Positions 2,639 through 43,745 of a stretch of DNA of 64,000 nt are shown piece after piece (within the stretch, counting starts at the first letter, position 1; every line of letters begins with the position of its first letter). The notes below the pieces were generated by a model. That model saw only the letters and a list, made by a program, of their open reading frames with translations. It did no database searches and was not told the origin of the DNA. The stretch comes from Azolla caroliniana (taxonomy: Eukaryota; Plantae; Polypodiophyta). Where the stretch lies: assembly GCA_043228905.1 (NCBI GenBank), contig JBHGNT010000015.1, positions 15,314,001-15,378,000 on the forward strand. The letters run 5' to 3'. Both the position numbers and the translations under genes were made by a program.

Positions 2639-5600
2639 TGTTGGGATTACGGTCCCTTCACATGGGATGGTCGGATATCGGAGATGAATGCCGACAAGCC
2701 CGGTTTCGGTTTCGGATCTGGATGACGAAGACCCCGGTTTCGGTACCGGATGACGAATGTACCCGGAGAGCGATCCGGATGCAGGGACATATCCGTGAAT
2801 ATGTTCGCTATGGGCCCCTGAGGCTACAGTTGTAAATAGCCCAAAGTCATATAAGTATAAATATGACTTAGGGCAAATAGTTTAGAAGTTGCTTCTTATT
2901 TTTCTGTTTTTTCCACTCAAGAGGAGTGAAGTGTAAGCAGCCGTGAGAGAGAGAGAGATAGAGCGCGAGAGAGGAAGAGGTAGACGCCTCTGTGTATTTC
3001 CGTCGCCTGTGGCGAGGACAGCGAGCTCAAGGTCGTCGCCTTGTAGCTCGCCATTGTATACTTCTCTGTATAGTGTTGGTTTGGAGTCTTGTACTCCCGT
3101 GGTTTTTCCCGTATAGGGTTTTCCACGTTAATCCCTGTGTACTCGCGTTTTGTTTCTCTGTGTGGTTCCTATTTTCTGCTCCATCGATTCGCGCTTACTC
3201 GGTTGTGGCCGAGCGGTGAAGGTGAATAGAAGCGTCTATTCCTTACAAACTGGTATCAGAGCGACTGTTGCAGAAAATGGAAGGCGGCGGCAGCGGGCAG
3301 CCGGGGATGATGGTGCTGAATGCACAGAATTACGCCGACTGGAAGATCAAGATGGAGGATCTTCTGATTGTTCGGGACCTGTACGAACCGATTGACAGGT
3401 CGGAAATACCGAAGGGGGTACTTGAGTCGGAGTGGAAGCTCCTGAACCGGAAAGTCGTAGCGACGATCCGACAATATGTCGATGTAAGCGTCCTACAACA
3501 TGTGGCGAACGACACCAACGCATATGAGATGTGGAAGAAGCTGTCGGGCCTCTACGAGAGGAAGAATGCGTTGAACCGGACCTCCCTGATGAGGAAGATA
3601 GTGAACCTCAAGTACCGGGACGGCGAGAGTATGGTTGAACACGTAAGCACGTTCATGGGATTCGTGAACCAGCTTGCGGCGATTAAGTTCCCGTTGGAGG
3701 ATGCAATGCAAGCCATCATCCTGATGTGTACATTGCCAGAAAGCTGGGAGAACTTGGTGGTGACTCTCAGCACCTCCTGCACCGAAGATAACTTGTCCTT
3801 ACAGACGGTAAAGACAAGTATTTTGAATGAAGAAGCGCGTCGGAGAGATAAGGAACCGGCCTCCGACCCGAAGATGTTGTTTACCGAATCGGATCGGGGA
3901 AGACAATGGAACCGGAGTCCGCAAAGACGGGAGAAGTCGGGGACCCGGTCGCAGTCAAGAGGAAGGCCCACATGCTTCCACTGTGGGAAGCCGGGGCACT
4001 TCCGAAAGAATTGTCGGCATTACCGAAAAGACAATGGAACCGACAACACCGATTCGAAGAAGTCACCGGAGAGAAACGGTGCATACCGGGGAGCCACGGA
4101 CCGGAATGGTTCGGATCGGCGAGGACAGGACCGGAAAAGAACGACGGCACTCGCGGCAAGTGAAGAGGAGATCATGCTCATCACCGAAGAAGGTGAACTA
4201 AACATTGCCGGCGATGAGACGACCTGGGTGGTCGATTCCGGAGCATCGTTCCACCTGACCCCGGAGAGAAGATACTTCTCATCCTACATAGCCGGCGAGC
4301 ATGGCTGTGTTCGGATGGGAAACGAAGGTACGTGCCGGATTGCCGGCATAGGAGACGTGTGGTTGACAACCCCGACCGGATGCAAAATGCTGCTGAAGAA
4401 TGTCCGACACGTTCCGGAGGTCCGACTGAACCTGATTTCGGCCGGGAGGCTAGATGATGAAGGCTACACGGGTAGCATCCGGAACGGTGTCATGAAGTTC
4501 AGCAAGGGGAGCTTGATAGTGGCTCGGGCCCGGAAGGTCAACACACTGTACCTGATGAATGCCCGGTTATGTCCGGAAGAGCTGAATGTGGCAGCCGACA
4601 CTGCCGGTGAGCTGTGGCACAAAAGACTGTGCCACATGAGTGAGAAGGGGATGAAGAGGCTTGCAGAAGACAACCTTATTCCGGTGAAGCATGTGCACCT
4701 AGAGAAGTGCACCGACTGCCTGGCCGGTAAGCAGAACCGAACCTCCTTCCACTCAAGGCCACTGACGAGACGTAGCGCACCATTGGAGTTGGTGCACACC
4801 GACGTGTGTCAGGTAGAAACGAAGTCACATGGCGGAGCCCAGTACTTCGTAACTTTCATAGATGATCACAGCCGAAGACTGTGGACGGCACCGTTGAAGA
4901 CAAAGGACCAAGTGCTGTGCGTCTTCAAAGAACTCCACGCGAGAGTGGAAAGGGAATCCGGCAAGAAGCTGAAAGCGATACGAGCGGATAACGGAGGGGA
5001 ATACCGGGGGCAGTTCCAGGAGTACTGTCGCTCGAAGGGAATCCGGCTCGAGTTTACTGTGCCGAAGACGCCGGAACTGAACGGGCTGGCCGAGAGGATG
5101 AACCGGACCATAATGGAGAGGGTTCGGAGTATGCTGGCGCATGCGAAATTACCCAAGGGGTTTTGGGCTGAGGCAATGTCGACGGCGACATATGTAATAA
5201 ACCGATCACCCTCAGTACCTTTGGACGGAGACACGCCGCAGAGAGTGTGGACCGGTAGGGAAGTATCCTACCGGCATCTGAAGGTGTTCGGGTGTCTCGC
5301 ATACGTGCACGTGGCGAAGGACCGGAGAGGAAAGCTAGATCCGAAGACCCGGCCATGCATATTCCTCGGTTACGGCGACGACGAGTTCGGCTACCGAGTA
5401 TGGGACCCGGTCGACAAGAAGATATTCAGGAGTCGAGATATCGTCTTTATGGAGGACAAGACACTCGCCGACTGGGAGTCGGAGAAGAAGATGAAGAGCT
5501 CCAAGTCGACCGGTGAGGATAAACTCCACGAGGAGCAGTCCCGACCGGCAAGGGACCGGTTAGCACTCGAGGACCCGGCCGAAGACGGTGAAGAAACAGA

Positions 5601-7972: not shown

Positions 7973-7984
7973 CAAACTCCCCCT

Positions 7985-10900
7985 TCACTCCGGCATGGGG
8001 TGTCTTTCCAGCCCGATCCTCTTCCGGCATGCGTCCAGCTTGTCGGGTGTCAGCACTTTGGTCAGCATATCTGACCCGTTCTCGGCCGTGTGGATCTTCG
8101 CCAATGTGAACTCCTGGTCATCTACCCTTTCCCGGATCCAGTGATACCTCCGCTGGATATGCTTTGTCCGGGAATGGTAGGCCGCATTCTTAGCAAGGTG
8201 GATGGCACTTTGACTGTCGCAGTAGAGTCGGTATTCCTCTTGCCGGATACCGAGCTCCCCGATGAAGTCCTTCATCCATAATATTTCCTTGCCGGCTTCC
8301 ACAGCCGCCATGTACTCCGCCTCTGTGGTTGACAATGCAACCGTCTTCTGCAGCCTCGACTGCCATGAGATAGCTCCCCCTGCATATGTCATCACATACC
8401 CGGATGTAGACCGGCTGGTATCCACATCAGCCGACATGTCTGAATCGGTGAAACCGTCCAGTTGAGGTTTTCCGGTGCCGAATCGGAGACTCATATTTGA
8501 AGTGCCCTTCAAATACCGGAGTATCCACTTGACCGCGTTCCAATGCTCCTTGTCGGGATTACTCATGAACCGGCTCACCACTCCGACTGCGTATCCAATG
8601 TCTGGTCGGGTACAAACCATTGCGTACATCAAGCTCCCGACGGCAGAGGCATATGGAATCTTCATCATATCTGCCTTCTCTCCTTTTGTCTTCGGGCTTT
8701 GCTTGCCGGACAACTTGTAGTTTGCTGGAAATGTCGATTCGACCGGTTTTGCATCTGACATGTTGAACCGGTGAAGCACCTTCGTCACATACTTCTCCTG
8801 TGATAGCCATAGTTGCTTCACTGACCGGTCCCGAATGATGTGCATCCCCAACATCTGTCTTGCCGGACCCAAGTCCTTCATTGAGAAGTTCCGGTTGAGA
8901 GCCTTCTTCAGCATCCGTATTTTTCCTTGGTCTCGTCCGACGATCAACATGTCATCCACGTACAGGAGGAGTATCAGGAAGTCCCCTCCTTCGAACTTCT
9001 TCACAAACACGCAGTGATCGGCCTGCGTCTTGTAATACCCTTGATCGGTCATGAAGGAGTCGAACTTCCGATACCATTGCCGGGGAGCCTGCTTCAGTCC
9101 GTACAGGCTCTTCTTCAACCGGCATACCAGGTGCTCCTTCCCTTTCTCCACAAATCCTTCCGGTTGCTGCATGTAGATTTCCTCATCGAGGTCGCCGTGG
9201 AGGAATGTCGTGTTCACGTCCAGCTGCTCTACCTCGAGATCCATGCTTGCTGCTATACTCAGCACCGTCCGGATGGAGGTCATCTTTACTACCGGGGCGA
9301 ATATTTCGTCGAAGTCCACGCCCTTCTTCTGCTGGAACCCCTTCACCACGATCCTGGCTTTGTATCTCGGGGGGTTGCCGGCATCTCCCGGTTTCAACTT
9401 GAACACCCACTTGTTTCGGAGTGCCCGCTTTTCTTTCGGCAGCTCCACCAATTCGTACGTATGGTTCTCATGCAGGGAATCCATCTCATCCTGCATGGCA
9501 CTTAACCATTTTCGGTTGTGGGTGTCTTCCTTCGCTTCTTCGAAGCTTTCCGGCTCCCCCTCATCGGTCAGCAAGACATGCTCTGCATCCGGAAATCTCC
9601 GGGGTGCCCTTCTCTCTCTGAGAGGATATCTACGTCTTCGGGCTTCGGTAATCGGTTCCTCCATTTGCTCTTCATCCGAATCCGATTCGGGGTCTTGACC
9701 GGTTCCGGTCTCAGCTTCCTCTACTTCTTCTTCTGCCGGTTCGGTATCCTCACCGTAACCGGCTGGTTCCTCGAGTGCTAATCGGTCTCTTGCCGGTTGG
9801 GTCTGCTCATTGTAGAGTCTATCCTTACCGGTCGACTCGGAATTCACTATCTTCTTCTCCGACTCCCAGTCGGCGAGCGTCTTGTCCTCCATGAAGATAA
9901 TATCTCGACTCCGGAGTATCTTCTTGTCGACCGGGTCCCACACTCGGTAGCCGAACTCATCGTCACCGTAAACGAGGAATATGCATGGCCGGGTCTTTGG
10001 ATCTAGCTTTCCTCTCCGGTCCTTTGCTACATGCACATACGCGAGACACCCGAACACCCTTAGATGCCGGTAGGACACTTCCTTACCGGTCCATACTCTC
10101 TGTGGCGTGTCTCCGTCTAGGGGTACTGAGGGTGATCTGTTTATCACATATGTCGCCGTCGACAGTGCCTCAGCCCAAAACTTCTTGGGTAGTTTTGCAT
10201 GCGCTAGCATACTCCGGACCCTCTCCATTATGGTCCGGTTCATCCTCTCGGCCAGTGCGTTTAGCTCCGGCGTCTTCGGCACGGTAAATTCGAGCCGGAT
10301 TCCCTTCGAGCGGCAGTACTCCTCGAACTGCCCCCGGTACTCACCTCCGTTATCTGCTCGAACCGCCTTCAGCTTCCGGCCGATTTCTCTTTCCACTCTC
10401 GCGTGGAGCTCTTTGAAGACGGATAACACCTGATCCTTCGTCTTCAGCGGTGTGGCCCACAGCTTCCGACTGTGGTCATCTATGAACGTCACGAAGTACT
10501 GCGCTCCGGCATGTGACTTCGTGTCTACTTGACAAACATCCGTATGCACCAACTCCAGTGGTGCATTACGTCTCATCGGTGGCCTTGGTCGGAAGGAGGT
10601 CCGGTTCTGCTTACCGGCCAGACAATCAGTGCACTTCTCTAAATGCACGTTCTTCACTGGGATGAGGTTGTCGTCTGCAAGCCTCTTCATCCCCTTCTCA
10701 CTCATGTGACATAGCCTCTTGTGCCACAGCTCACCGGTAGTGTCGGAAGCCACGTTCACTTCTTCCGGACATAACCGGGTATTCATCAGGTACAGTGTGT
10801 TTACCTTCCGAGCCCGAGCCACAATCAGGCTCCCTTTGCTGAACTTCATGACACCGTTCCGGATGCTACCCGTGTAGCCTTCATCATCTAGCCGACCGGC

Positions 10901-12031
10901 TGATATCAGGTTCAGACGAACTTCCGGAACGTGTCGGACATCTTTCAACAGCAACTTGCATCCGGTTGGTGTTGTCAGCCACACATCTCCTATGCCGACA
11001 ATTCGGCATGTTCCTTCATTCCCCATCCGGACATAGCCGTGATCACCGGCTGAGTAGGATGAGAAGCATTTCCGGTCCGGGGTAAGGTGGAACGACGCTC
11101 CGGAGTCTACCACCCAGGTCATCTCATCGCCGGCATGGTTTATCTCACTCTCCTCGATGATGAGCATCAACTCCTCGTCACTTGCCGCAATTGCCGTCGT
11201 TCCCTTCCGGTCCGGCCCCCTCCGGTCTTTACCGTTCCGGTTCGGGGTTTGCTTCGAATCGGTATCGTCGGTTTCCTTGTCTTTACGAAAATGCCGACAG
11301 TTCTTTTGGAAGTGTCACGGCTTGCCGCAATAGAAGCAAGTAGGCCTCCCCCTTGACTTTGATCGTGTCCCCGACTTCTCCTGGTTCTGGGGACTACGGT
11401 TTCTATGTCTTCCGCGTTCCGATTCGGTAAGGAGCGCTTTGGAGTCGGAGCTCGTATCTTTGTCTTTCCGACGAGCCTCCTCATCTAGCAAGCTCGACTT
11501 TACTCTTGCTAGGGATAGCCGTTTTCCTTCCGGCCCGGCGTTGCCCAAAGTAACAACTAACGTCTCCCAGCTATCCGAGAGGGAACCGAGCATGAGTAGC
11601 GCTAGGACCTCATCGGCAAGAGGTACTTCCAATGACGTTGCCTGGTGAATCAACCCCTGGAAGGCATTCATATGCTCCGCCATGCTGGAGCCATCTTGGT
11701 ACCGGAGTCTTACAAGCTTCCGGAATACCGACGCCTGATTGACAGCATTTTTGTTCTGGAACATCATGCCGATCTTCTCCCAGAGCTCATGAGCTTTGCT
11801 CCCTTCATTGAAGTTGTTGTACAGGCTCATGTCGATGAAGCACCGTATGTACGCCGTTGTCTTCATGTGCATCACCTCCCATATCGCGGCATCGATTTTG
11901 TCCGGTCTCTTGTCCCCGAACTGAACCGGCAGCCAGAGGTCTTTAACCACGAGCATGTCCCTCATCTTCGACTTCCACACTGAATAGTTGGAGCCGGTGA
12001 GCTTGAACATGCCGCCAAACGATTCGTCCAT
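7985..12031 (-). pseudogene. Copia A gag-pol polyprotein with a single in-frame stop in the zinc knuckle
   Basis: ATG 12031 (MDESFGG). GGA>TGA at 11315-11317 in CFYCGKP*HFQKNC. Downstream ORF 7985-11170 is in the same frame: PR (VVDSGAS), GAG-pre-IN, IN (HTDVC, DNGGEY), RT (YVDDML), RNase H. Confidence 0.92.
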
Positions 12032-13684
12032 TTTCTGTGTCGATTTCGCTCTGATACCACTTGTTGAGAACTTGACGTTCCTGTTGTCCGACGCTCGGCC
12101 ACAACCGAGCTTCTTTACATACACAGAAAAACAGGTAATGAAACGCGACACAAGAAAAAAAAAAGGAGAAATGGTACACAGGAGGTATACGTGGAAAACC
12201 CCAAAATAGGGGAAAAACCACGGCAGCCCACAAGCTGCAAACTGTCGCTATGTAGAAATATACAACAGTGAGATCACTGAGGCAACGACCTCGTGCTCTC
12301 AGATCTTCGCCACAGGCGGCGGTTACAACAAAGGCAACGACCTCGTCTCTCTCTCTCTCTCTCTCTGTACAGTTACGCGCTCTGATTTCTTCTTGCACCA
12401 ACAAGGAAGAATAATTAATCACAAGAATGACAACACACCTAAAAGTTTGCCCTAAGTCATATTTATACTAATATGATTTTTCGGCTATTTACAAATGTAG
12501 CCTCGATGGGCTCCATCCGGCTCTCCGGAGTCGGGTTCTCCTCATCCGGTTCATACCGGGCCTACACCATCCGACTCTCCGAAGTCGGGTTTTCCCCATT
12601 CGGTTCATACCGTTTCGGCCTCGGCCGAGTTTGTTCGTCGGCACTGTTCTTCTCCCTTCCCATCCGGAGGGACCTGTCTACCAACAAAGACAAACACAAA
12701 AGCGAAGGAAAAATGACCTAAAAGCAAAACTCAAATCATAACAAAACTTTAAATCGTATAGAAATACGAGAGAGAGTGAAAAAAGGAGATGAGGGCATCC
12801 ACGAAATTTTAAAACATTTGAGGGGTATCAAGCAAAATTTAAAAAACATGAGGGCACAATATAAAATTTTACAAACAAGAGGGCACCACTAGAATTTTGA
12901 AAATCCCCAAGACTACTCACACACACTCAAAACAAAGGAAGAACACACATACATACGACATGATTTTGGACCCATGACGAAGTTCATAAGCCGACAAAAT
13001 GAGAATGTTTGTGTCGCGGAAAGATTTGCTAACCGACAAAGATGTTCGAGTCAAGCATTCCGATCGAGGGAGTTGATCGTTGAAAGGACCGATGGAAGTT
13101 CCGGTCGAAGAAATATCATCATCAAGGCATGTGGGATCGACGTGCAAGGCACTTTCCCACGGGCGTGCCATATTGTGTTACCCCGTATGAGATGTACGGA
13201 GAGTCAATGTGATAAGCGAGGGTCAAATGGTATCATGATGATTGTTGTGTGTGTGTAGGGGGCATAAATGTAATTGTGAGTCAATACGTATGTGAACACA
13301 TGCACACGTGTGTGCATGTGGATGGATACGAGGAGGTGTGAGTGAGTGTCCAGTATGAATGCTCTAGGGGGCTTACACCCCTTTGTATCTACCCCCTCTT
13401 GTACTATTTAACCCCTTATGGGGAATGAATGAATGAATGAACATTCTCTCTCTAATCTCTCTCTCTTTGACATCTTTTCTCTTCTCTCTCCCTCTCTCAC
13501 GTTGAACCCCCTTGGGAGGGGGCTGGAGCCATTCTAGGCACCACCCCCCACCCCGCAATGCTTCTCTATATGATCTCTCTCACCATCATACTCTCCATCA
13601 CCATGTCTATCTTCATTACCAATCATCATAGTTATCATTCATCATCATCATCGTCCTTAACCCTAACCCTAAAAACCTATAACA

Positions 13685-16836: not shown

Positions 16837-19024
16837 TCGAACCCATGACCTTATGCTACATGGGTCGAGCTCTTGACCATTAGACCATACATTGTAATAC
16901 GTAGAATATTATTTTCATTTATGTTTTATTATAGAAAATTGATGTATATTCCAGATTTCTCTGGAACATTCTAGAAACTTCAGGAGTATTCCTTAGAACA
17001 CTATAAAAGGAGGCACAAGGCATTATTTCGAACCAAAATCGGTTCAAACTGTCAGGAACAGTACTAAGACAGAGAAGGAATTAGTACTAAAAGAAGTATT
17101 AGTACTAAGAGAGGTGAAGAACTCTCAAGAGAAGGAAAGAGTGAGTGAGAGGGAGGGAGAGAGAGATCGAGAGAGAGAGTGTGTGATGATAAGAAAAGAT
17201 ATATATTATGTGAAGAGAATGTACATTAGTAGCTAGGAGGCTTAAGACTGGCGTTGAACCGATTTGGTTCGAAATAATGCCTTGTGCCTCCATTTATAGT
17301 GTTCTAAGGAATACTCCTGAAGTTTCTAGAATGTTCTAGAGAAATCTGGAATATACATCAATTTTCTATAATAAAACATAAATGAAAATAATATTCTACA
17401 TATTACAATGTATGGTCTAATGGTCAAGATAGTTAGGAGGCTTAAGACTGGCATTGAACCAATTTGGTTCGAAATAATGCCTTGTGCCTCCTTTTATAGT
17501 GTTCTAAGGAATACTCCTGAAGTTTCTAGAATGTTCAAGAGAAATCTGGAATATACATCAATTTTCTATAATAAAACATAAATGAAAATAATATTCTACG
17601 TATTACAATGTATGGTCTAATGGTCAAGAGCTCGAAGCGACTATATGACTCCCTCGGAAAAGGTTTCGCTACCACTGAGGCGTAGGTAGGCTCTGATCTT
17701 GCCCTCAGAATCTGGAATTGTCGTTCCGAACGTCGTTCGAAGAGGCGGTTGTCGCATCTCACCGCGCGACTAATTGCCTCTGTTAATGACTTTTGCTCTT
17801 CGGGGAAGGTCAAGAGTAAATCCTTGACATCATTGCATAAGCCATAACGGAATTGCTCCATCAATGCGTGATCATCCCAAGGGATATCGGCAGCAAGTAG
17901 GTGGAAATCTGCAGCGTATGCGGAAGCTGGACGATCACCTTGGCGTAATCGCCGAATTTTGTTGATTGCAGTCCTTATGCTATCAGTATCTCCAAAACGG
18001 GCCTTAAACTCACTTATAAATTCTTCAAAACTATTTAGTAATGGAGATTCCTTTTCCAACAATGGAGCAAACCATGCTAACGTTGAGCCACTAAGGAGAG
18101 TGCCTACTAGTCCCACTCGTGATGCATCGGTGGGATATCGAGAAGGATGCATTTGTATCACTAAACGTACCTGATTCAAAAACCCTCTAAACTGTGATCG
18201 GGTCCCATCAAATTTTGCAGGAAGACCGATCTTGGGTTCTTTGTGAATCCCTTGAGTGCTTGATCCTTGTTGTTGTAATGATATGATAGTCGCTTCGAGT
18301 TGTTGTACACGTAACGTCATCTCCCCATGTTGTTTTTCCAGCGCTATTTGTTGAAGATCCCCCAACAAACGATGATTTTCTTGTTCTAGTGCTACAAATT
18401 TTTCTTTTAAGCACTGGAGCTCTGAGAAATTAGATTGGTATTCCTGAGCACTAACAGTTTCCATTTTACTAGGGAGGATAAGAGGATTAATAAGAAGATA
18501 AAAGGAAGAGGAAAAGCAACGACGCCGAGCAAACCGACTATGTCTTTATTGCAGTGGACCAGGTCATATCGCGGTAAACTGTCCCCATAGGCCAAGAAGG
18601 CAGGTAAACCAAATAGTTGCTAGTTTTGATTGTACTAAACCCGAGTCTATTTTAGTAGGGATACATTGTAATACATAGAATATTATTTTCATTTATGTTT
18701 TATTATAGAAAATTGATGTATATTCCAGATTTCTCTGGAACATTCTAGAAACTTCAAGAGTATTCCTTAGAACACTATAAAAGGAGGCACAAGGCATTAT
18801 TTCGAACCAAATCGGTTCAACGCCAGTCTTAAGCCTCCTAGCTACTAATGTACATTCTCTTCACATAATATATATCTTTTCTTATCATCACTCTCTCTCT
18901 CTCTCGATCTCTCTCTCCCTCCCTCTCACTCACTCTTTCCTTCTCTTGAGAGTTCTTCATCTCTCTTAGTACTAATACTTCTTTTAGTACTAATTCCTTC
19001 TCTGTCTTAGTACTATTCCTGACA
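16837..19024. mobile_element. Rearranged chromovirus-type (Tcn1-like) Ty3/gypsy derivative with four partial LTR copies in both orientations
   Basis: CATGG duplicated at 16832-16836 and 19025-19029. LTR pieces at 16837-17049 (+), 17050-17429 (-), 17430-17634 (-) and 18661-19024 (+, ends CTGACA). Confidence 0.75.
17635..18464 (-). pseudogene. Ty3/gypsy gag (Retrotrans_gag/DUF4939-like), C-terminally truncated
   Basis: PAKFDGTRSQFRGFLNQV...LAWF...LRQGDRPASAYAADF...FRYGL. The ORF runs into LTR sequence at ~17635. The matching zinc knuckle (CLYCSGPGHIAVNC) is on the + strand at ~18540-18585. Confidence 0.85.
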
Positions 19025-31800: not shown

Positions 31801-32932
31801 TCCGATTCGTTCGGTGGGGAATGGAAGCCGGTGTTGCTTCCCGAGTTGGCAGGCTTCACATATTTGAACCTTTTGGCCACTAAACTTCAGCAATCCGAAC
31901 ACAACTTGTTTCGATTGCAGATCTTGAAGCCTCCGATCCACTTATGCCAGAGATCGATGTCCGATTCAATTTTCTGTCCAATGGCAAACATGGCAGTGCT
32001 GACGTCATTTGTGTTGAGGATGACAACATCCTCCCTTCTCGGCACCCTTGAGCGATTATCCGGCCTTCTTCCTCGATGAAGCACCGGAGGTGCATAAACC
32101 GCACCTGCATTCCCTGGTTGACGATTTGTTCGACCGACACCAGGTTCTTTGTGATTGTCGGAACGTGTAGTACATTCATCAGCTTTCCCTTTTGTCCAAC
32201 ATGACATAAAGGGACTTCTCTGACATTCACAATCGGCTGAGGAGTGTCATCTTCGGTTTTGACTGTTGTACGTTGTCGTGAAGAAAACCGTCCCTTAGCG
32301 TAATCGGTGCATAGCGCGCATGAACCGGCTCTTCACGCGTGCGCGCCCTTTAATGTATATAATAGAGAATTAGGTACAAAGGTATATCCTAGGTAGTTAG
32401 ATTCGGTAGGTAGGAAGTTAATGAGGGAAACGGCTCCCTTCTTGAAGCTATAAAAGAGAGGGAGACGCGGGGAGAGAGGATAAATTATTTTTTTTGAGGA
32501 GGACGAAGTGTTGTCGAACCGAAACCGAACGCTTCTCCTCTGTTCGTTCTCCATCGCTCTTCTCTACAAGTTTTCGGGAGGCTCGCGCTGCTTCAAGGAA
32601 CGCCCGTGTGCTTCCGGCAGCACCTCCATCCTATCCCCTTTCGTGCGCAGACGAGCAGGCATCGGCATCTGTTCGCCGGCCTGTTCGGTTGTAACCGCTC
32701 GCGTGCTCTGTTGTTTATGTGTCATTCGTTAATATACAAACATTCGTGTCTCTCTGTCTCTGTGTCCATTCGTGTCTTCCGCGTTGACGGGCCGTGTCCC
32801 TGTGTTTCTTTGCTCATACGTAACCGGGCGTCTCTCTCTTTCTCTTTCCCCTTCTATCGCCTGCTCTTCGGTTCAAGACCCCGGTGGTCCCGCCTCATTT
32901 CTCCACGCACGCGCGTAGTAACGCGACATCTT

Positions 32933-32950
32933 TGGTGAACCCGACGTGAA
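32933..32950 (+). promoter_or_regulatory. Primer-binding site complementary to tRNA-Trp
   Basis: TGGTGAACCCGACGTGAA, 4 nt after the LTR, is the reverse complement of the recalled plant tRNA-Trp 3' end ...TTCACGTCGGGTTCACCA. Confidence 0.85.
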
Positions 32951-32972
32951 CAAGGCGGCAGAGGAGCAGAAG

Positions 32973-34892
32973 ATGAGGGGGTCGGATCTTGCAGAGGCCA
33001 TGGCTTCGGCCGTGGACCGGATAGTGAGCGCGCGCGAGGGCACCGGCGCCCTTGACAGGGCTATTGAGGCGATCGTCGGTACGATCGGCCGGTTCAGTGG
33101 AAAGGATGCCACGAGTTATTTGGCGTCCTACCAGGCGGAGATGTTGATGAGGGATATTCCAGAAGAGAAGCGTCCTGCCGGATTCCCTCGAGTGGCGATG
33201 CCGGGCATCCATGCGGAGGTGCTCGAGGTCCGGGCGGAGAGCCGGACCTGGGAGGAGTTCGAAGGACGGCTCCTGGAGAAATAAGGGTTGGATAACGCGC
33301 TTCGACTTTCGAAGCGGGGCTTCATAGAGTGGGTGGAGTCCCCCAACAAAGGAAGAAATGTGTCGGTACTCCTCCGGGAGTTTGAGGAACGCTTTGCGCG
33401 CCTTTCGGCGCTCGATCGGACCGTTCTTGACACAAGTCGTGTCCTACTGTTTGTCAAATAGGTTGACACACGGGATCGGGAGCAAGTGGGCTCCTTACTG
33501 GAAACCGAAGACGGGCTGACGACCGACTGGGCCGCGGTAAAAAGAGTTTGCGGCCGTTTTGACAAACGGTGGGAGTGGGCTGATACAGGGGCGACCGGGG
33601 CGGGTCCTGTCGCAGCAAGGAAGCTCGAACTGATACCACAGGCGCGAAGGGAAGAGACCCGGGAGTGGCTCGAAAGGCCCGACCTTTTCATTCCTCCTCA
33701 CCCGACCTTCCCACAAGTACTGACCAGCGATATCCAAAGGGCCCTGAACTGAAACGACGGGTGAGGAGGAATGAAAAGGCTGATGGAAGAGGCGGCGGCC
33801 CGGCACGCGGAGACCGTCCACTACTCGGCGTCAGTCGGTATTCGGGTCGGAGGCAGCGAGGCCCGGAAGGAGAGCAAAGCCGGGTTCTGGCCGACGATGC
33901 TGGAAGGCCTCGCCGGTGCCCGACTAAGGAAAGACGAGGCGGACCGCGCAGAGAAGCGGGTCCAGGAGGTAACCGGGTGGAGTGACCCAGTCGAAGAAAA
34001 GACGGGTTTCGTCGAAGCACCTTGCCAGAACTACGAGGCTCTGGTTGAAGACAAACGGGTAGGTAAAACCAGAGGGGCCGGACCCTCACAGAGATACGAA
34101 ACCCGATTCAGGCCGAAACAGAACGAGGCCGGTGAGACCAGTGCCCGGGATAACCACAAGAAGGACGAATACCGGTTGGGCACGGAGATCGAAAGGACCA
34201 CGGATCTACGAAAGGTCCTAGAAGAATGAATCCTCGACAGCAAGGTGGAATTGTCGTTGCGGGAGGTGCCCGGAATCACCAAGAAGGAGTTCCACGACTC
34301 CATCGTAGACTTGGTGAAGAGGAAGAGGCTGTCAACGGAGACAGAACTGGAAAGGCCGGTGGAGGTGCGGATGACGCACATAGAGGACATGGCGCTGGAA
34401 GACGAGTGGGCGGAGAGCCACTATTCGAGGCCACACTGGGCCCGAGCGACCACGGAAACCCCGGTGAAGATCGGAGATGTTCAGGAACCGGTGGTGGCGC
34501 TGGTGGACCACAGTTCGGAAATAAACCTGATGTCCATGGACTTCTACAAGAAGGGGAAATGGCCGATCAACACCAAGCATGGGTGGAAGATACGGGCGGC
34601 GACGCGCGCCACCGAGGAACTACACGGGGCCTGCCCAAACGTGCGAGTCAAGATCGGCAACGTCGAGATAGACCAACACTTCTTTGTGTAGGAGACGTCC
34701 TCGCACCAGGTCATACTGGGAGAACCGTACATTACGGCAGCATGGATGGAGACCAAGGTGTTGGACAACGGGTCGGCTTACGCGAGGGTCAAGAGTCAGG
34801 ACGGGCGTCATTCGGTCCAGTTCCTGACGGTGCGACCGAACCACGAGCGAAATCGCGAGTCCCTCGGTGGCGAGAACCGAGAGGATTTTTAG
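32973..34892 (+). pseudogene. Gypsy ORF1 gag-protease, one frame with about five premature stops
   Basis: ORF pieces starting 32946, 33486, 33771 and 34245 share one frame. Aspartic protease ALVDHSSEINLM...VILGEPY. Ends GAT TTT TAG. Confidence 0.8.
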
Positions 34893-37800
34893 AGAGGGTT
34901 GTCAAGGCGTGGGGCCGCGATAGTCCGGACACTCCGGGAAAACCCCACAAATGTACGATAGAGGCGAAACCGAAGAAACCTTGTACCATAAGTAGGAAGT
35001 TTGGTTTCTCCAACAACGGAGGGTGTACGATAGTTGGCGTCGTTGGCCGAGAAAAGACAAGGGCGGAAGAGCGACTTCGGGCGTACGGAGTTCTCGGGCC
35101 CAGCAAGGAAATCAACAGAGCCGTGGAGGCGGTCTCCTTCGATGATACCTTGGGAATATTGCGAGAGGTGGTCGGAGAGGGCCTTAAAGAGGACCGGACG
35201 ATACCGATTTGTTCAGAAGAGATGTACGAAGTCATCGCGGACTTCAGTCGAGGGCTCGAGTCGGATCGGATGGCCTGGGTTAACACGAAGTACAAGACTG
35301 TGAACCGGAAGGTAAGGCCAGTCGCGGCACCCTTACCGGAGGGCAGCGAGTTGCGAATCAAGGGGGTCGCGTCGGACCCCAGTTTATGAGATCCGGCCTG
35401 CATAGGACACACCTTCACCGACAGAACGCTACGGGAGCTCAAAATCGGTGGGGGTGGGTTCCTACTGCCGGCGGAAGAAGACCGGTTTCGGAGAGTGCTC
35501 GGAAGGCACGGGAAAGCCTTCGCATTCTCACCGGAAGAGATCGGGTGCGTAGACCCGACAGTCGTGAAGCCGATGGTGATATTCACGGTACCGTATGTGC
35601 CGTGGAATCTCAAACCAATTCCGGTACCGAGAGCTCACATCCCGGAGCTGATGGAGCTGTTGAGGCAGAAAGTCGATATGGGCATCCTCGAACCGTCGAG
35701 TGCCCCGTACTCGAACCGGTGGTTTACCGTACCAAAGAAGAACGGGACGTTGCGCTTCATTCAAGACCTGCAACCGGTCAACAGAGTGACCATTCGGAAC
35801 GCAAGAATCGGACCAACGATAGACGAGTTCGCGGAGGCCTTCACCGGAAGGTCGATCTACTCGATCGGTGATCTGTACTCGGGGTACGATCAGTTCCAAC
35901 TAGCCATAGAGAGCAGAGACATTACGACGATGCGAACTCCTCTCGGCCTAGTGCGGATGTGTACCCTACCACAAGGAGGGACGAACTCGGTGGCTCACAT
36001 GGTGAATGCGATGAACAAGGTGCTGAGGGATTGTATCCTGGACATCACCATGCCATTCTTGGACGACATCCCGATCAAGGGATGTCCGGTGGAGGAAAAG
36101 GACGAAACAATCGGATCGGACGGATGCCGGAAATTCATGGCGACACACATTGACGACTGTGAGAGGGTGCTGCAGAGGCTCGAGGACGCGAGGCTCACCT
36201 TCTCCGGGGAGAAATCGGCCTTCGGGCAATCAGAGATCATGGTCGTCGGACATCTATGCGGACCGTATGGCCGGAAACCGTCTCCGGCTAAGGTGGAAGC
36301 CATCTTCGCAATGAAGCCCGACTGTAACTCGGTCACGGAGGTACGGAGGTTCTTGGGAGCATGCACGTTCTACCACATATGGATCCCGCATTACACCCAC
36401 GTTGCCGAGCCGCTATACGGGTTGCTGAAAAAGGGGCGAAAATTCAAGTGGCGAGACGAGCATACGGAGTCGGTCCGAAAGATGAAGGAGGCTCTTGCTG
36501 CAGCTCCGGCACTCCGGAAGGCTGTCTACGAGAAAGGCACTCCCATTACATAACGGTAGATACAAGTCCGACCGGGATCGGATGGGTCGTCAACCAAGAA
36601 GATGAGGACGACATTCGGTTCCCAATCCGGTTCGGCGCGAAGGTCCTCAACGAGCGACAACGAGGATACGCCCAAGTTAAACGCGAACTCTGGGGTATCG
36701 TTTCGGCGGTGAAGGCCGATAAAGACTATCTGATCGGGACAGAGGTGATCATCGAGACGGACTGCCTACCGATTCTCGGCATGGTTTCCAGATGCGCAAC
36801 CCCGGACCTGGCAATGCTCAGGTGGATAGCGTACATCAAGTCCCTGGATCCGGAAATACGACACATTTCCGGGAAAGACAATGCCATGGCCGACATGCTT
36901 TCGAGGGCGCGATTCGACGACGAGGGTGGCATGGTTTTGGAGGACAAGGAAGTCGGCGTGGACTTCTTCGAGGCGGCTTACGTAACAACCGAGGGGGGGA
37001 GCACTCCGGCGCTTAACGATTTCAACGAGAGCAAGTACGACGGGGAGTGGCTGCAGATTGGGGGATTCTTGAGGACGATGACGCCGGACGCGTCATGGAC
37101 AAAGAACGAGGCCAACCGGATCCGGAAGAAATCATACCGATTCTTTCTCCGGGACGGATACTTGTGGAAGCACCCGAAGAAGAGAAACAGCATCCCGCTC
37201 CGAGTAGTGGCGATGGAGGAGGAAAAGGAGGAGTTGTTGAAGGCCTACCACGACAGCCCCTGGGTTGGACACCATGGGACGTGGGCCACATTCAAGAAAC
37301 TAAAGGGGAAGTACTGGTGGCCAGGACTGTACCGAGACGTGCATCGGTTCCTGACAACTTGTGAGAGCTGTCAGATACACTCCATAGTCCGACATCGGGA
37401 CGAGCTTCACCCTACATACCCTCCGGCCATCCACTTCAAATGGATGGTAGATTTGGTGACGATGTCGATGGGTGTAGGGCAGATGCGATATCTGGTGCTG
37501 GCCCGGGAGGACCTGACGAACCAGGTGGAAGGTTGAGCCCTACAGAACAAAACGATCGCGGCCGTGTGTCGGTTCCTGATCGAGGACGTGATATGCCGGT
37601 ACGGGTGCGTCGGAAAGATCGTGGCTGACCGCGGGGAGTTGGATGCCGAAGAGGCCGAGGATTGTTCGACCGGTTAGGGGTCAAGCTCTCGCTCACCACA
37701 TCATACAATCCGGAGGCGAACGGGAAGGTGGAGCGCGGGCACGGACCGATCGTCAAAGCGCTAATCCGGGCGTGCGGAGGCCAGGTCGGGAACTGGCCAC

Positions 37801-38384
37801 GACTGTTACCTTATGCCTTGTGGGCGGACCGGACAACGCACAGTTCGGTAACCGGGTTCATGCCGTCAGAGATCATGTTTGGACAGAAGTCGATCATGCC
37901 GATGGAATGGACGATCTCCTCTTGGGCGACAGTGGACTGGAGAGACGAGATGAGCCGGGAAGAACTGCTAGCGGCGCGTATACGGCAGCTCGAGCGGAGG
38001 CCAGAGGACGTGGAACGAGTGGCGGAGAGACTTCGGACGGTGAGGATGAGGAACAAAGCCCGGTTCGACCGAACGCACCGGCTCCGACCAAAGAAAATCG
38101 AGGAAGGCGACTCGGTGCTAGTCTACGATAGCAGCCTCGACAACCAGCATCGGGCAACACGGAAGTTTGCAAAGCGGTGGTTCGGGCCTTACGTGGTAAC
38201 GAGCGCCAACGACAACGAGACGTATCACCTGGCGGAACTCGACAGTACGAGGATGGCGATACTGGTAGCAGGGAAGCGGATCAAAGCGTTCAAGAAGCGC
38301 CACGACGGCGAACCGGATCTAAGAGGCCTGGACAGCGACGACGAACAGTCCGAAACGGAGGACGAACCGATGGACGAGGAATAG
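34889..38384 (+). pseudogene. Gypsy ORF2 pol (RT-RNase H-integrase) with stops and frameshifts
   Basis: YKTVNRKVRPV, DLYSGYDQ, TLPQGGTNS, FLDDIPIKG, TVDTSPTGIG, H-H-C-C integrase zinc finger, YNPEANGKVER, WFGPY. No chromodomain seen. Confidence 0.88.
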
Positions 38385-39615
38385 GAACCCAGACCAGTTT
38401 TCTCCAACCAGAACCCAATTTTGGCGCATACCAGTGGATGCGCGGTTAGGTGGGGGCGGATGTCGTGAAGAAAACCGTCCCTTAGCGTAATCGGTGCATA
38501 GCGCGCGTGAACCGGCTCTTCACGCGTGCGCGCCCTTTAATGTATATAATAGAGAATTAGGTACAAAGGTATATCCTAGGTAGTTACATTCGGTAGGTAG
38601 GAAGTTAATGAGGGAAACGGCTCCCTTCTTGAAGCTATAAAAGAGAGGGAGACCCGGGGAGAGAGGATAAATTATTATTTTTTTGAGGAGGACGAAGTGT
38701 TGTCGGACCGAAACCGAACGCTTCTCCTCTGTTCGTTCTCCATCGCTCTTCTCTACAGGTTTTCGGGAGGCTCGCGCTGCTTCGAGGAACGCCCGTGTGC
38801 TTTCGGCAGCACCTCCATCCAATCCCCTTTCGTGCACAGACAAGCAGGCATCGGCATCTGTTCGTCGGCCTATTCGGTTGTAACCGCTCGCGTGCTCTGT
38901 TGTTTATGTGTCATTCGTTAATATACAAACATTCGTGTCTCTCTGTCTCTGTGTCCATTCGTGTCTTCTGCGTTGACGGGCCGTGTCCCTGTGTTTCTTT
39001 GCTCATACGTAACCGGGCGTCTCTCTCTTTCTCTTTCCCCTTCTATCGCCTGCTCTTCGGTTCAAGACCCCGGTGGTCCCGCCTCGTTTCTCCACGCACG
39101 CGCGTAGTAACGCAACAACGTTTTAGGGTTAGGGTTAAGGACGATGATGATGATGAATGATAACTATGATGATTGGTAATGAAGATAGACATGGTGATGG
39201 AGAGTATGATGGTGAGAGAGATCATATAGAGAAGCATTGCGGGGTGGGGGGTGGTGCCTAGAATGGCTCCACCCCCCTCCCAAGGGGGTTCAACGTGAGA
39301 GAGGGAGAGAGAAGAGAAAAGGTGACAAAGAGAGAGATTAGAGAGAAATGTTCATTCCTTCCCCATAAGGGGTTAAATAGTACAAGAGGGGGGGTAGATA
39401 CATAGGGGTGTAAGCCCCATTGAGCATTCATACTGGACACTCACTCACACCTCCTCGTATCCATCCACATGCACACATGTGTGCATGTGTTCACATACAT
39501 ATCGACTCACAATTACATTTATGCCCCCTACACACACACAACAATCATCATGATAACATTTGACCCTCGCTCATCACATTGACTCTCCGTACATCCTGTA
39601 CGGGGTAACACAATA

Positions 39616-39631
39616 TGGCACGCCCGTGGGA
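39616..39631 (+). promoter_or_regulatory. PBS-like motif, tRNA-Arg(UCU) type
   Basis: TGGCACGCCCGTGGGA versus recalled TGGCACGCCC(A/G)GTGGGA, 5 nt after the LTR. Identical in copy 1 at 13155-13170 (-). Confidence 0.7.
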
Positions 39632-41617
39632 AAGTGCCTTGCACGTCGATCCCACATGCCTTGATGATGATATTTCTTCGACCGGAACTTCCATCGGTCC
39701 TTTCAACGATCGACTCCCTCGATCGGAATGCTTGACTCGAATATCTTTGTCGGTCAGCAAATCGTCCGCGACACAAACATTCTCATTCTGTCGACTTACG
39801 AACTTCGTCATGGGTCCAAAATCATGTCGTATGTATATGTGTTCTTCCTTTGTTTTGAGTGTGTGTGAGTAGTCTTGTTTTTGTCTCCTGTTGATCTATT
39901 TACATATAATTCTCCCTATATCACTGTCTTGTTTTTCTCTCATTTTTGCTTCTATCATTGTTCACCTATTTTTCTTTCTTTCCACTCTATCTCTTGTTTT
40001 CCATATGCTTGCTTCTTGCTTCTTCTTTGTCTTCTTTTGTCTTCTTCCTTTGATGTTTTGGTCGGCCAGTCTGTGTGTGCATCTTCTTCATGGAATCCTC
40101 TCTATTCTCCCTTCTCTTTTTCCTTCTACTTCTTCTGTGTCGTTTCCCGCCATGTCTTCCTCCTTCTTTGGTTCTTTTTCTTCCTTTCGTTTTCTTTTGT
40201 TCTGTCTCATTTTCTGCTTTGTACTTCATCTTTCTCTTCTTTCTATCTTCCTCTTTTGTTTTGCATCTCCCTTCTTCCTATGGTTGTTTTTGCTTCCTCT
40301 CCTTTTGATGTTTTGTGTGTTTCCATTTTTGTCTCTGACTTTGGTTCCGGACCCGTCTTCGTCCATCGTCCTTCGTCTCTTCATTGTCCGTCGGCGTCTC
40401 TATCTCTGTCACTGGCTACTGATCCGTCGGCGTCGGCGTTGGTGTCACCTCCTCCCGGTCATCCTTCTTTATTGTTGTCTTTGTCTAGCTAGTCCGTCCG
40501 CTCTAGCCACTCCAGCCACTCTTCGGCTATTGTTTGGCCGTCAGTTCGTCTGTTGTCCGGCTTCTGGTCCATTCCAGATGTTGTTCCGACCGTGCGTCCA
40601 GTCCGTTGTCCTGGTCGTGTGTCTGTTTCTTCGGCCGCATTTGCGCATTTTAGCCGCCCCGACCGCAGCCGGCTACTTTCTGATCGCCGCCCCTATTCAG
40701 CCGTCATCATCGTTGTTCCGGCCGCTCTTTGACTGCTTGTTTGATCCGGCCATTGTGTTCATTTGTTTGGCCCATTCGGTTGTCTCTTCTAGGCTGTTCC
40801 GGCCATTCGTCCTCCCGGCTCTTTGTGTCCGTTTGTGTCGGTGTCATTGTTCTGGCCATCGAGTCGTCTTAATCTGGATCGTTCTAGCTAACTTTGTTAG
40901 ATGTGTCTCTGTATCCAACCGTCTCTGTCATTTCTTCGTCGTCCGGCGTTGTCCGGTCCAGAGGTCTCTGTTTTGGCGTCGTTCGGCCACTACGACCGCT
41001 CTTAGGTCGCTCTCCGGCCTCGTCCAGCCCTCCGGTTGCTCCAGCTATTGTCCGACTGTTTCCGGTCCTTCCGGCTGCTCTTTCCACAGTCTGGCCCATC
41101 AGGCCATGTCTGTCCGGTCCATCTCCAGATATCTCTGTCGTCGGCCTTGTCGGCGCTATTTGGCCAGTCTGCAGTTGGTCGTCCGTCCCGTGGCCACTCT
41201 GTTCAGTCGTCATATGGTTCTCGGCTGTTGATATCTGATGGTTGTCTCTTGCATCACACGTTCTTGCACACACACGTTGCTAGTTCTCGTACACTTGCAC
41301 ATCTGTATCGTTGCGTCTCATTCTGCGACTTTTCTAGGACATTGTGATCACCATTTGCTGCGCATCATCGATTCGATTTATCGTACATTCTTCCATTCCG
41401 TCCATTCATTGACTTCTTTGCAGACATCCTCATCACATATCATGCTTCAACTCCGTCTCGCACTTTGCCACTGTCATTTGTTGCTAACCGCAACCGCACA
41501 CTCACGTATCTATGTCGTCGTTACTCACACATGTCCACCATTTCTTGCACTTAGTCACTATGTCTTGCATCGCCACGTATCATTCTTCGACTCCGTCTCG
41601 AAAGGGGGGTCGCCTTA

Positions 41618-41627
41618 GTGGTCGCCA
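41618..41627 (-). promoter_or_regulatory. Second PBS-like motif, tRNA-Arg(UCG) type, on the opposite strand
   Basis: TGGCGACCAC on the - strand, 5 nt from the right LTR. Identical in copy 1 at 848-857 (+). Confidence 0.6.
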
Positions 41628-43745
41628 AAATGTGTTGTACGTTTTAGGGTTAGGGTTAAGGACGACGATGATGATGAATGATAACTATGATGATTGGTAA
41701 TGAAGATAGACATGGTGATGGAGAGTATGATGGTGAGAGAGATCATATAGAGAAGCATTGCGGGGTGGGGGGTGGTGCCTAGAATGGCTCCACCCCCCTC
41801 CCAAGGGGGTTCAACGTGAGAGAGGGAGAGAGAAGAGAAAAGGTGACAAAGAGAGAGATTAGAGAGAAATGTTCATTCCTTCCCCATAAGGGGTTAAATA
41901 GTACAAGAGGGGGTAGATACATAGGGGTGTAAGCCCCATTGAGCATTCATATTGGACACTCACTCACACCTCCTCGTATCCATCCACATGCACACATGTG
42001 TGCATGTGTTCACATACGTATCGACTCACAATTACATTTATGCCCCCTACACACACACAACAATCATCATGATAACATTTGACCCTCGCTCATCACATTG
42101 ACTCTCCGTACATCTTGTACGGGGTAACATCGACAATTCTCGGTTGTTTCGGTTTCTCCAGAAATGAGAACCACTCTTCGTGGCTCATCATGTGGTTTGA
42201 CGCTCTGGAATCAACATACCATACTTCCTCTGATCCGGAAGTGGTCTTCTTCATCAAGTTTGCCTTGTGCTTCATCACGAAGGTTGGCCCCTTTCCGGTT
42301 TTCCTGGTTCCGGATCCTTCTGATCCTTCAGCATAGTGCAAACTTTGTCGGTTCCCTTGTCCGGCCTTGCTGGATCCGTTTTATCCGAATCGGCACACTT
42401 CTTCCAGCACTCACTCTCTCTGTGGCCTTTCTTGCCACAATACCAGCATTTTGTATTTGTTTTCGACTACCGGTTTCCAGCTCCAACTTGACTCCCCTTG
42501 CTTGTGGAGGGTCCAGAACTGTTGTCGGCACTGTCTCTATGCCTTCGGTTCTGCCCTTTGTCGGCCGCCTCCATTGTGTGCCGACCCACCTCGTCCTCCA
42601 CGCCCACGGGGCCGATCCGCCTCCGTGTACAACATCCAATTGTCTGATTGAGTGGTCCTCAACCCACTCGCGTGGTTTTCTTTGACCATCAACATTGATT
42701 GTAATTCGAAGAAGGACGGTGGCTTCTCCCGGGTGCAAATTGTCGTCCGGATTGGCCCGTACCATTGTGCTAGACCACCAAGACTGATCTGGACCATCTC
42801 GTCTTCTTCCACCGTTACGTTGATGGATCCGAGTGCATCGTAGATCTCCTTAATCTTGGTGGTGTAGTCTGTAACCGATATATCTCTCTGCCGGATGTTA
42901 TTCAACTCTTGCCAGAGCTGCAACTTACGGGTTGTGGTACTTGCGGCGAAAATCTTCCGTAGATTTCCCAGGCCTCTTTGGCGTTTTTGCATCCTTGATG
43001 TAGCCACGCATCTTATCTTGCACACCGGACATGAGGCAATACAATACTCGGCTCGCTCCTTGCTCCCATCCTAGGAAGTCTTTGTGTGCCGGCTCCGGTG
43101 CTACCTCGTTGGTTCCTTCCACATAGCTCCAGTATCCAAACCCCAGCAGGTACCGGTGCATTTTATATGACTAGGATGCATAGTTGCTCCGGTCGAGCTT
43201 TTCTGTGGGAAGCGAACTTGCCATACCTTTGTCCATTTCGGTTCTCTACTGTTCTTCACCGTTGTTAGTATTTGTCTTCAGAAGCATCTGTCGGCTGTAG
43301 AGGAGTCTCAACCCTCGCGCTCTGATACCATGTAAAAATTAGCATGCAGAAGCTTGACAAAACCGGTTTAGTCGAGCAGCAACAGAGAATAAAACACAGG
43401 TTCAATGGAAGCTTGAGAGTATTTAGCACACACAGGAGAGAGAGAGAGAGAGCAAAACATAAACTCTATTAAGAAAAATAACACTCTTGTATCACTCTAT
43501 CATGCTCTGTACATACAACGTGCTAAACAACACTATTTATACAAGTCCTCAAAAGGACTGATAGGAGTACTATGTACTTCAATGCTCATACGAGCGACTG
43601 ACACTAACTATGAGGACTCTGACTACCTAGTAGTCTAGGAGTATAGGCTACTACTAGCCTTCCGATTCACATTTGAATCCGGCTCACCGATCCGGCTCTT
43701 GCTTGTTCAGCCGATCCGGATACGGTTGAGCTTGCTCACTCAACA

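Follow-up and report, generated by a model that had tools for sequence, protein, structure and literature searches.

The 64 000-nucleotide stretch of Azolla caroliniana DNA described here (GenBank assembly GCA_043228905.1, contig JBHGNT010000015.1, positions 15 314 001–15 378 000 of the forward strand; hereafter the window, with coordinates counted from its first letter) contains two copies of a long terminal repeat (LTR) retrotransposon with a tRNA-like sequence close to its 3' LTR and no polypurine tract (PPT) there. We assign it with high confidence, anatomy and orientation being taken together, as a non-autonomous Ty3/gypsy-type LTR retrotransposon of ~3 kb whose sense strand is the minus strand of the window. 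The element consists of a 5' LTR, a 5-nt spacer, a 10-nt primer-binding site (PBS) of the Arg(UCG) type, a purine-rich non-coding interior, a 40-nt tRNA-Arg(UCU) mimic, a second 5-nt spacer and a 3' LTR. The features of copy 1 are as follows.

41633–42129, minus strand: 5' LTR, sense start TGTTACC, end ..GTACAACA, from LTR–LTR alignment
41628–41632, minus strand: spacer CATTT between 5' LTR and PBS; the coding relatives have an equal 5-nt spacing, CAATT
41618–41627, minus strand: PBS TGGCGACCAC (motif B), 10-nt complement of a tRNA-Arg(UCG/CCG)-type 3' end; identical in copy 2 at 848–857
39656–41617, minus strand: non-coding interior, sense strand 68% purine (A 39%, T 13%)
39616–39655, minus strand: 40-nt mimic of the 3' part of tRNA-Arg(UCU), from covariance model R1 (67 bits, E 8e-17), alignment and pair counts
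39611–39615, minus strand: spacer TATTG from the CCA of the mimic to the 3' LTR; 2 nt (tg or gg) in all relatives
39122–39610, minus strand: 3' LTR, main part; 39118–39121 is the ACGT duplicated by a Gypsy insertion
32264–32273, minus strand: last 10 nt of the 3' LTR (plus strand TGTTGTACGT), cut off by the Gypsy insert 32274–39117
32259–32263, no strand: left target-site duplication, TTGAC
42130–42134, no strand: right target-site duplication, TCGAC (4/5 match)

The LTR pair of copy 1 was located by direct-repeat search and alignment at 39118–39610 and 41633–42129. The left LTR is in two pieces, the first 10 nt being 32264–32273, because the Gypsy element at 32274–39117 inserted into it with a 4-bp duplication, ACGT. 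Once this nested insert is removed the LTRs measure 499 and 497 nt, have the form TGTT..AACA and are 98.8% identical; the target-site duplication TTGAC/TCGAC (4/5 match) is visible only after the same removal. No empty target site for the insertion was found within the window. A telomere-like run, TTTAGGGTTAGGGTTAAGG, is present at 39122–39140 and 41637–41655, at the U5 end of each LTR in the sense direction, and is kept in copy 2 and in one related locus, L005.

At the left junction, read on the plus strand, the LTR runs ..AACA to 39610 and is followed by CAATA (39611–39615) and TGGCACGCCCGTGGGA (39616–39631; motif A). At the right junction, read on the minus strand, the LTR runs ..AACA to 41633 and is followed by CATTT (41632–41628) and TGGCGACCAC (41627–41618; motif B). 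The original prediction described two TGGC motifs, each 5 nt from an LTR, in a non-coding element with no purine tract next to either LTR. All of these features are present in the sequence at the positions described, and copy 2 retains both motifs and both 5-nt spacers (843–857 and 13175–13155). Within the 64 kb, exact matches to motif A or motif B are confined to the two copies. The 2022-bp interior has no Pfam match and its longest sense-strand open reading frame (ORF) encodes 129 residues; its size falls between those usual for TRIM and LARD elements, and the absence of gag/pol between the LTRs marks it as non-autonomous. On the sense strand, no purine run of at least 8 nt was found within 150 nt before the 3' LTR, and the sole such run near either junction is GAAAGGGGGG at 41600–41609, 23 nt off the LTR. 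Apart from the PPT, the element has all the structural hallmarks of an LTR retrotransposon. ARAGORN detected no tRNA in the window.

Motif A is the last 16 nt of the mimic. A complete tRNA-Arg(TCT) with its CCA end, detected by ARAGORN in the related metagenome contig L006, served as the reference. Compared with this tRNA, the mimic consists of positions 49–58 (the 5' strand of the T-stem and TTCGA), 13 inserted nucleotides that contain a 4-bp hairpin and come exactly after A58, and positions 59–76 less one C, with a CCA end. Positions 59–76 correspond to the classical 18-nt primer tail, and the missing C is one of the CC at 65/66. Eleven contiguous nucleotides, together with the T-arm, are identical to the tRNA, in agreement with the earlier claim that the RNA reproduces a tRNA 3' end, CCA included, at the PPT position. 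The predicted resemblance of both motifs to tRNA-Arg ends also holds, motif A matching the Arg(UCU) of L006 and motif B the 10-nt complement of human Arg(UCG/CCG).

On the plus strand of the window, motif A extends over 40 nt as the exact reverse complement of a module found in related elements. A covariance model built from the modules of these relatives, R1, scores both window copies at 67 bits (E 8e-17); applied to the whole window, it returned only the mimics of the two copies, with no diverged version in any other Gypsy or Copia element. An origin of motif A by chance, or as a degenerate PBS, is ruled out by the 67-bit match of the full module. The inner hairpin occurs in three versions (GTGC/GCAC, GGAC/GTCC and GTGT/ACAC), in which three of the four pairs vary on both sides and 97.5% of cells are paired, and the pairing collapses when the partners are slid by 1–3 columns. 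Single-sequence folding of the mimic gave a stability no better than that of shuffled sequences (z about −0.9 to −1.2), so that the structural support comes from covariation only. The mimic forms an island of conservation, with pairwise identities of 0.92–1.0 versus 0.01–0.45 in the adjoining upstream 3' untranslated region.

The 14 related loci all come from ENA metagenome assemblies. An exact scan of metagenome contigs with a 15-mer from motif A gave 120 loci, 112 of which were judged from their flanks and contig sources to be chance matches; the relevant contigs are eight plant-derived LTR elements (ERZ10343xx and ERZ1034425). A search with the protein of an extra ORF found downstream of pol, which was meant to escape ascertainment by the 15-mer, gave five more contigs, L121–L125. 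These five loci, found through the protein (49–62% identity) and not the motif, all carry the module with the 18-nt tail unchanged.

In the relatives, the 15-mer is the tail of the conserved 40-nt module, which is followed by 2 nt (tg or gg) and the LTR start TGT... The module is sense-oriented in 14 of 14 loci and stands 2 nt before the 3' LTR wherever that LTR is present; in coding loci it lies after gag-pol and the long extra ORF. The sense-oriented module follows the stop codon of the extra ORF in L076, L119, L121–L125, L024, L006, L021 and L102, and the LTR TATA box has the same sense. In the relatives examined, no purine tract was found at the PPT position. The extra ORF ends with ..ILDILEED or a similar sequence (L076, L119, L024, L006, L021 and L102), and integrase is encoded upstream of it in L076. 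L076 is assembled through the LTR and reads ..ATAACA, CAATT and the PBS TGGCACGCCCGGT; all five of L121–L125 carry the module, gg and an LTR, and three of them show the 5' junction ACA CAATT with a PBS. Four coding relatives have a visible PBS, and in all of them it lies 5 nt from the LTR (ACA CAATT TGGC..).

L121 is a full element. Its 1708-residue polyprotein comprises gag, CCHC, reverse transcriptase (RT), one Ty3-type RNase H and integrase, with neither a chromodomain nor a second RNase H (no PF00075-type domain), and is followed by a 1075-residue extra ORF with no Pfam match. The RT of the relatives matches the Ty3 RT structure 4OL8 with an E value of 6e-71. An autonomous partner with an unusual RNase H, which had been raised as a point to check, is not what these elements represent, since they have an ordinary single Ty3-type RNase H; they also differ from Tat/Ogre elements, which have a second, archaeal-type RNase H in pol that is lacking in L121. 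The extra ORF (L076, 1408–4893; L121, 6083–9310; L122, 5990–9025) encodes 1000–1160 residues downstream of pol and is proline-rich and coiled-coil-like, with a conserved C-terminus (..ILDILEED) and no Pfam match; only six relatives were found, all in ENA metagenome assemblies. An exact-protein look-up of the L076 extra ORF returned no record.

Two further relatives lie closer to the window element. L117 is a non-coding, purine-rich element with the same layout, which has ~75 nt upstream of the mimic in common with the window element. The LTR of L005 is 74–80% identical to the window LTR and the locus reads in the order mimic, tg, LTR and flanking DNA; the ~190 nt adjoining the window module are homologous to the same region of L005. 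A phmmer search with the integrase against 1.84 billion representatives gave best matches that were mostly 30–50% identical. Two integrase matches from NCBI genome assemblies (L126 and L127) have no mimic, and L126 has no detectable LTR pair; a scan of viral contigs for the 3' junction found nothing. The window element belongs to a Gypsy lineage whose coding members have gag-pol and a long extra ORF, and is presumably mobilized by it. All sampled members of this lineage have no PPT and carry the mimic 2 nt before the 3' LTR; the 5-nt 3' spacer is peculiar to the window family. What the window adds is a non-coding member, a heterologous PBS and this spacer variant.

The two motifs are not equivalent: motif B is an ordinary PBS, whereas motif A forms the end of the 3' mimic. 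The original prediction of two equivalent convergent PBSs, with possible replication from either strand, therefore does not stand: motif A belongs to a 40-nt module that is sense-oriented in every related locus and, in the coding loci, follows the coding region, and the LTR promoter, the strand composition and the homology to the relatives give a single orientation. The minus strand is identified as the sense strand because the regions next to the module are homologous to the regions upstream of the mimic in L117 (~75 nt) and L005 (~190 nt), because the interior is 68% purine and TATTTAA (position 232 of the 5' LTR) follows a CATG cluster when read on the minus strand, and because motif B, 5 nt past the 5' LTR, then has the PBS spacing of the relatives. 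The LTR TATA of L117 is in the sense of its mimic. The claim that both inner junctions have the same geometry is correct in that 5 nt are present at each, but the causes are separate, the 5' spacer being the norm among the coding relatives with a visible PBS and the 3' spacer specific to this family (2 nt in the relatives).

On the opposite assignment the plus strand would be the sense strand, with motif A (CAATA + TGGCACGCCCG) as an Arg(UCU) PBS, motif B as a short copy of a tRNA end or a chance match and GAAAGGGGGG as a displaced PPT. Two observations agree with it: the sequence ..TAACA CAATA TGGCACGCCCG hardly differs from ..TAACA CAATT TGGCACGCCCG, which is the true 5' junction in the coding relatives, and the purine tract is on that strand, 23 nt off the LTR. 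However, the likeness of the junctions is forced, because the LTR ends are inverted repeats and the PBS and mimic are mutual complements, so that the two junctions must look alike with one of them reverse-complemented. Past 11 nt, moreover, the match of motif A is to the reverse-complemented 40-nt module (67 bits) and not to the leader that the relatives have after their PBS, the adjoining 75–190 nt have their homologue in the sequence before the mimic of L117 and L005, and the plus strand is 68% pyrimidine with TATTTAA facing the opposite way. We consider this assignment very improbable.

The PBS of the coding relatives matches tRNA-Arg(UCU) over 13 nt, with both C's included. The window PBS, TGGCGACCAC, differs from the PBS of the relatives, TGGCACGCCCGGT, with the 5-nt spacer kept. 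It is the 10-nt complement of ..GTGGTCG-CCA, the 3' end of tRNA-Arg(UCG/CCG) in human, a sequence that may not be that of the host (printed in bioRxiv 10.1101/2021.02.06.430044), and is also the core of the ERV9 PBS (PMC4724089). The assignment of the window PBS to an Arg(UCG)-type tRNA, made from these sequence matches, is provisional. The coding relatives have tRNA-Arg(UCU) at both ends, whereas in the window element the Arg(UCU) mimic is accompanied by a PBS of another kind, the Arg(UCG) type.

The L006 locus contains, at 1190–1266 (element-sense positions 1–77), a full tRNA-Arg(UCU) with CCA in antisense orientation at the site of the 13-nt PBS of its relatives. After the tRNA come leader-like sequence and, immediately adjoining it, the C-terminal end of the extra ORF. 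The arrangement resembles the fossil of an RT that read through the whole primer tRNA, with a later internal deletion; if so, it would be direct evidence that tRNA-Arg(UCU) primes this lineage.

Copy 2 (~498–13684) has the plus strand of the window as its sense strand. Its recognizable ends are as follows.

498–857, plus strand: 5' end of copy 2, with a partial 5' LTR (498–842), spacer CCTTT (843–847) and PBS (848–857)
13131–13684, plus strand: 3' end of copy 2, with the mimic (13131–13170), spacer TATTG (13171–13175) and 3' LTR (13176–13684)

The 5' LTR of copy 2 is truncated at 497 by the end of a Copia LTR, and the interior is contiguous only when a nest of Copia elements (2011–12686, duplication AAGAC) is removed. 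CCTTT and a 10-mer identical to motif B occupy 843–857, and 13175–13155 hold motif A, reverse-complemented, together with its 5-nt spacer. Identity to copy 1 is 82% in the 5' part and 95% in the 3' part; the last ~270 nt of the interior (39611–39877 in copy 1, including mimic and spacer) are 95% identical, and no alignment is possible in the middle. The LTRs at the two ends of copy 2 (498–842 and 13176–13684) are only ~83% alike, so that this copy is a hybrid, probably produced by recombination between two subfamilies, and does not represent a clean second insertion. Over the first 80 aligned nucleotides of the 5' leader, which take in the LTR end, the spacer, the PBS and a further ~65 nt, the copies differ at four positions. 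Since the LTRs there are ~83% alike and the leader differs at only four of 80, its conservation is not specific to the PBS 10-mer. As the 5-nt 3' spacer is present in both copies, it must already have been in the RNA that integrated.

The position and conservation of the mimic suggest that it takes part in priming of the plus strand. Correct LTR ends require the 3' end of the plus-strand primer to lie at the U3 border, where there is no PPT and the CCA of the mimic occupies the position of a PPT 3' end; the mimic probably defines the plus-strand start. Annealing of a tRNA is the mechanism that we prefer, at slightly less than an even chance. In such a scheme, the minus-strand cDNA would copy the mimic and RNase H would clear the template, upon which the cDNA would bare an 11-nt perfect site for tRNA-Arg(UCU); with the hairpin extruded, ~27 nt could pair in all. 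A second packaged tRNA would then anneal and its CCA-3'OH would prime the plus strand into U3. The primer would be a host tRNA ending in ..CGGGCGTG-CCA, and the 3' end of the host tRNA-Arg(UCU) would be expected to read ..CCGGGCGTG. This route would reuse activities that the element already has, namely annealing of a tRNA, initiation from a tRNA and tRNA removal. Co-folding of the 3' 28 nt of the tRNA with the complement of the mimic gives near full-length pairing with the hairpin extruded, a result that is partly true by construction. In the predicted pairing, the extruded DNA hairpin falls opposite A58 of the tRNA, a residue that bears a pairing-blocking methyl group in many tRNAs. As the relatives have 5 extra nucleotides at the U5 end, a 5-nt overhang on the U3 side (..ACA CAATA-3' on the processed strand) should be tolerable to the same integrase. 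Taken as a whole, the proposal that a plant Ty3/gypsy lineage without a PPT primes both strands with host tRNAs, which in the window element would be of the Arg(UCG) type on the minus strand and Arg(UCU) on the plus strand, is a tentative one, with odds somewhat against it.

Several points weigh against this reading. The role in priming is itself inferred from position and conservation. All 16 copies of the mimic seen are without one C that the PBS of the same elements keeps, and a C that is lost in the one and kept in the other indicates that the module is inherited and not renewed from a tRNA in every cycle. The exact 15-mer served to find nine of the 14 related loci, and its invariance in those nine is by construction. 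The pairs of the inner stem are all Watson–Crick, so that an RNA hairpin and a DNA hairpin are indistinguishable, and the hairpin consequently does not discriminate between annealing of a tRNA and an RNA primer. The reference for tRNA-Arg(UCU) is a related metagenome contig and that for the Arg(UCG) end a human sequence, neither being the tRNA set of the host. Finally, the 3' spacer is 5 nt (TATTG) in both window copies, as opposed to tg or gg in all 14 relatives. The fixed one-C deletion fits either an RNA-fragment primer or an inherited site under tRNA annealing.

An RNA-fragment primer could be supplied by the element itself. The mimic segment of its RNA would survive RNase H and be cut after the CCA, serving as a PPT substitute with no second tRNA involved; the hybrid of mimic RNA and minus-strand DNA would resemble the tRNA/PBS hybrid that this RNase H recognizes when it removes the minus-strand primer. 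The position and conservation of the mimic suit such a primer as well as they suit tRNA annealing, and the fixed one-C deletion, with the PBS keeping its C, suits an inherited cis element, for which an exact match to a tRNA is unneeded. The upstream half of the T-arm and the hairpin are also predicted to fold by themselves in RNA, although the folds of the mimic are no more stable than those of shuffled sequences, as noted above. A continuous RNA, however, offers no RNA–DNA junction as a guide for the cut, RNase H resistance is not known for a G+C-rich mixed sequence of this kind, and the RT–RNase H of the relatives is of the ordinary Ty3 type with no extra domain. We regard priming by the element's own RNA as possible, at perhaps one chance in a handful or slightly better.

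A different function would be to bridge or circularize the genomic RNA, as the bipartite PBS of Ty3 and of Drosophila Gypsy does, with the plus strand primed elsewhere. Bridging could proceed through pairing of mimic and PBS (11–13 nt complementary in the coding relatives) or through capture of the freed 5' acceptor and T-stem strands of the tRNA. PBS and mimic are complementary over 11 nt in L076 and L121–L123, and tRNA-binding segments near the 3' end have precedents in Ty3 and Gypsy (PMC5371799; PMC1635307). In the window element, though, the PBS is for a different tRNA and shares only TGGC/GCCA with the mimic, which is still intact in both copies; that the mimic was kept when the PBS switched tRNA argues against a mere role in PBS/anti-PBS pairing. 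Nor would a bridge need a CCA fixed 2 nt from U3. The U3 end would still have to be defined with no PPT present, and the mimic is identical to the tRNA and not complementary to it, unlike the 3' sites of Ty3 and Gypsy. Bridging is thus an unlikely account of the mimic.

The abundance of the mimic was followed in read contigs from four DNA runs carrying two organism labels. The bin that contains the mimic has the highest summed depth of the stretch, exceeding the element's own LTR 3–10-fold and the interior more than 100-fold, and 19 contigs join the mimic, through a 2-nt spacer, to an LTR start of the L102/L117 type. The deep mimic bin and the contigs linking it to another LTR family indicate that the module is common to many families in the host. 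In host contigs, the segment 39703–39805 is followed by (TG)GTAACA and then by either the same stretch again or a conserved unrelated sequence. It looks as if another family, of far greater abundance, has this segment as its LTR start, and the window element may have acquired its 3' interior from a related U3.

Other mobile elements occupy parts of the window. The Gypsy element at 32274–39117 (6.8 kb; RT, RNase H and integrase; LTRs at 32274 and 38461) is inserted 10 nt into the LTR studied here, and its 5' LTR is followed by TC and TTTGGTGAACCCGACG. Nested Copia elements lie at 1–497, 2011–12686 and 2639–7663, the outer one being on the minus strand with a 5-bp duplication, AAGAC. This outer Copia (2011–12686) is interrupted by an intact-looking Copia with an ORF at 3268–7353, and the truncation of copy 2 at 497 is due to a third LTR end of this family. 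A minus-strand Ty3-type gag ORF (17535–18464) shares its 3' end with two head-to-tail 200-nt units that are 97% identical (17230–17629).

Retroelements can alter the way in which primers are made, as in the self-priming of Tf1 and the half-tRNA primers of copia and Ty5, but these variants concern the minus-strand primer only. In hepadnaviruses, the plus-strand primer is translocated to DR2 and works by identity between two sites; that primer is a capped fragment of the virus's own RNA, neither a tRNA nor a tRNA look-alike. The tRNA-like element near the PBS of HIV-1 is another case of a genome that mimics part of its primer tRNA; it resembles the anticodon arm, lies in the 5' untranslated region, acts on LysRS and primer placement and is unconnected with plus-strand initiation.

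The window element shares with canonical LTR retrotransposons, including Ty3 (PMC5371799), the TG..CA LTRs, the 5-bp target duplication and a PBS a few nucleotides after the 5' LTR, and its relatives encode the gag, RT, Ty3-type RNase H and integrase of Ty3; it differs from them in having no PPT and, in its place, a sense copy of the 3' part of a tRNA with CCA. The bipartite 5'–3' PBS of Ty3 and Drosophila Gypsy (PMC5371799; PMC1635307) likewise places a second tRNA-related sequence near the 3' end of the genomic RNA, and the coding relatives use one tRNA species for both ends. The 3' sites of Ty3 and Gypsy, however, are complementary to the primer tRNA and lie in U3 or the 3' untranslated region beside a normal PPT, whereas the window mimic is identical to the tRNA, abuts U3 and has no PPT beside it. 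Helenus and TRIMp3 are also non-autonomous LTR elements that hold tRNA-derived sequence, in their case a tRNA-like Pol III promoter unit inside the LTR with a PPT present (PMC10886601); in the window element, only the 3' part of a tRNA is represented, at the PPT position outside the LTR, and the right LTR does not contain it. A search of open-access papers and preprints found no described element in which a tRNA-end copy takes the place of the PPT.

A PPT-primed plus strand is treated as universal in retroviruses and LTR retrotransposons and underlies both annotation tools and models of RNase H specificity. Tools that require a PPT will miss or mis-orient elements of the present kind, the lineage of which has recently been active, as shown by the 98.8% identity of the copy-1 LTRs. 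The copy of a tRNA end at the PPT position points to an undescribed way of starting the second strand, and a mimic at the U3 border would be a new solution to second-strand priming under either priming mechanism, tRNA or RNA fragment. The window element represents a natural uncoupling experiment, in which the mimic was retained and the PBS switched tRNA; if both strands are indeed primed by tRNAs, the plus-strand site would be an independent module dictated by the helper machinery.

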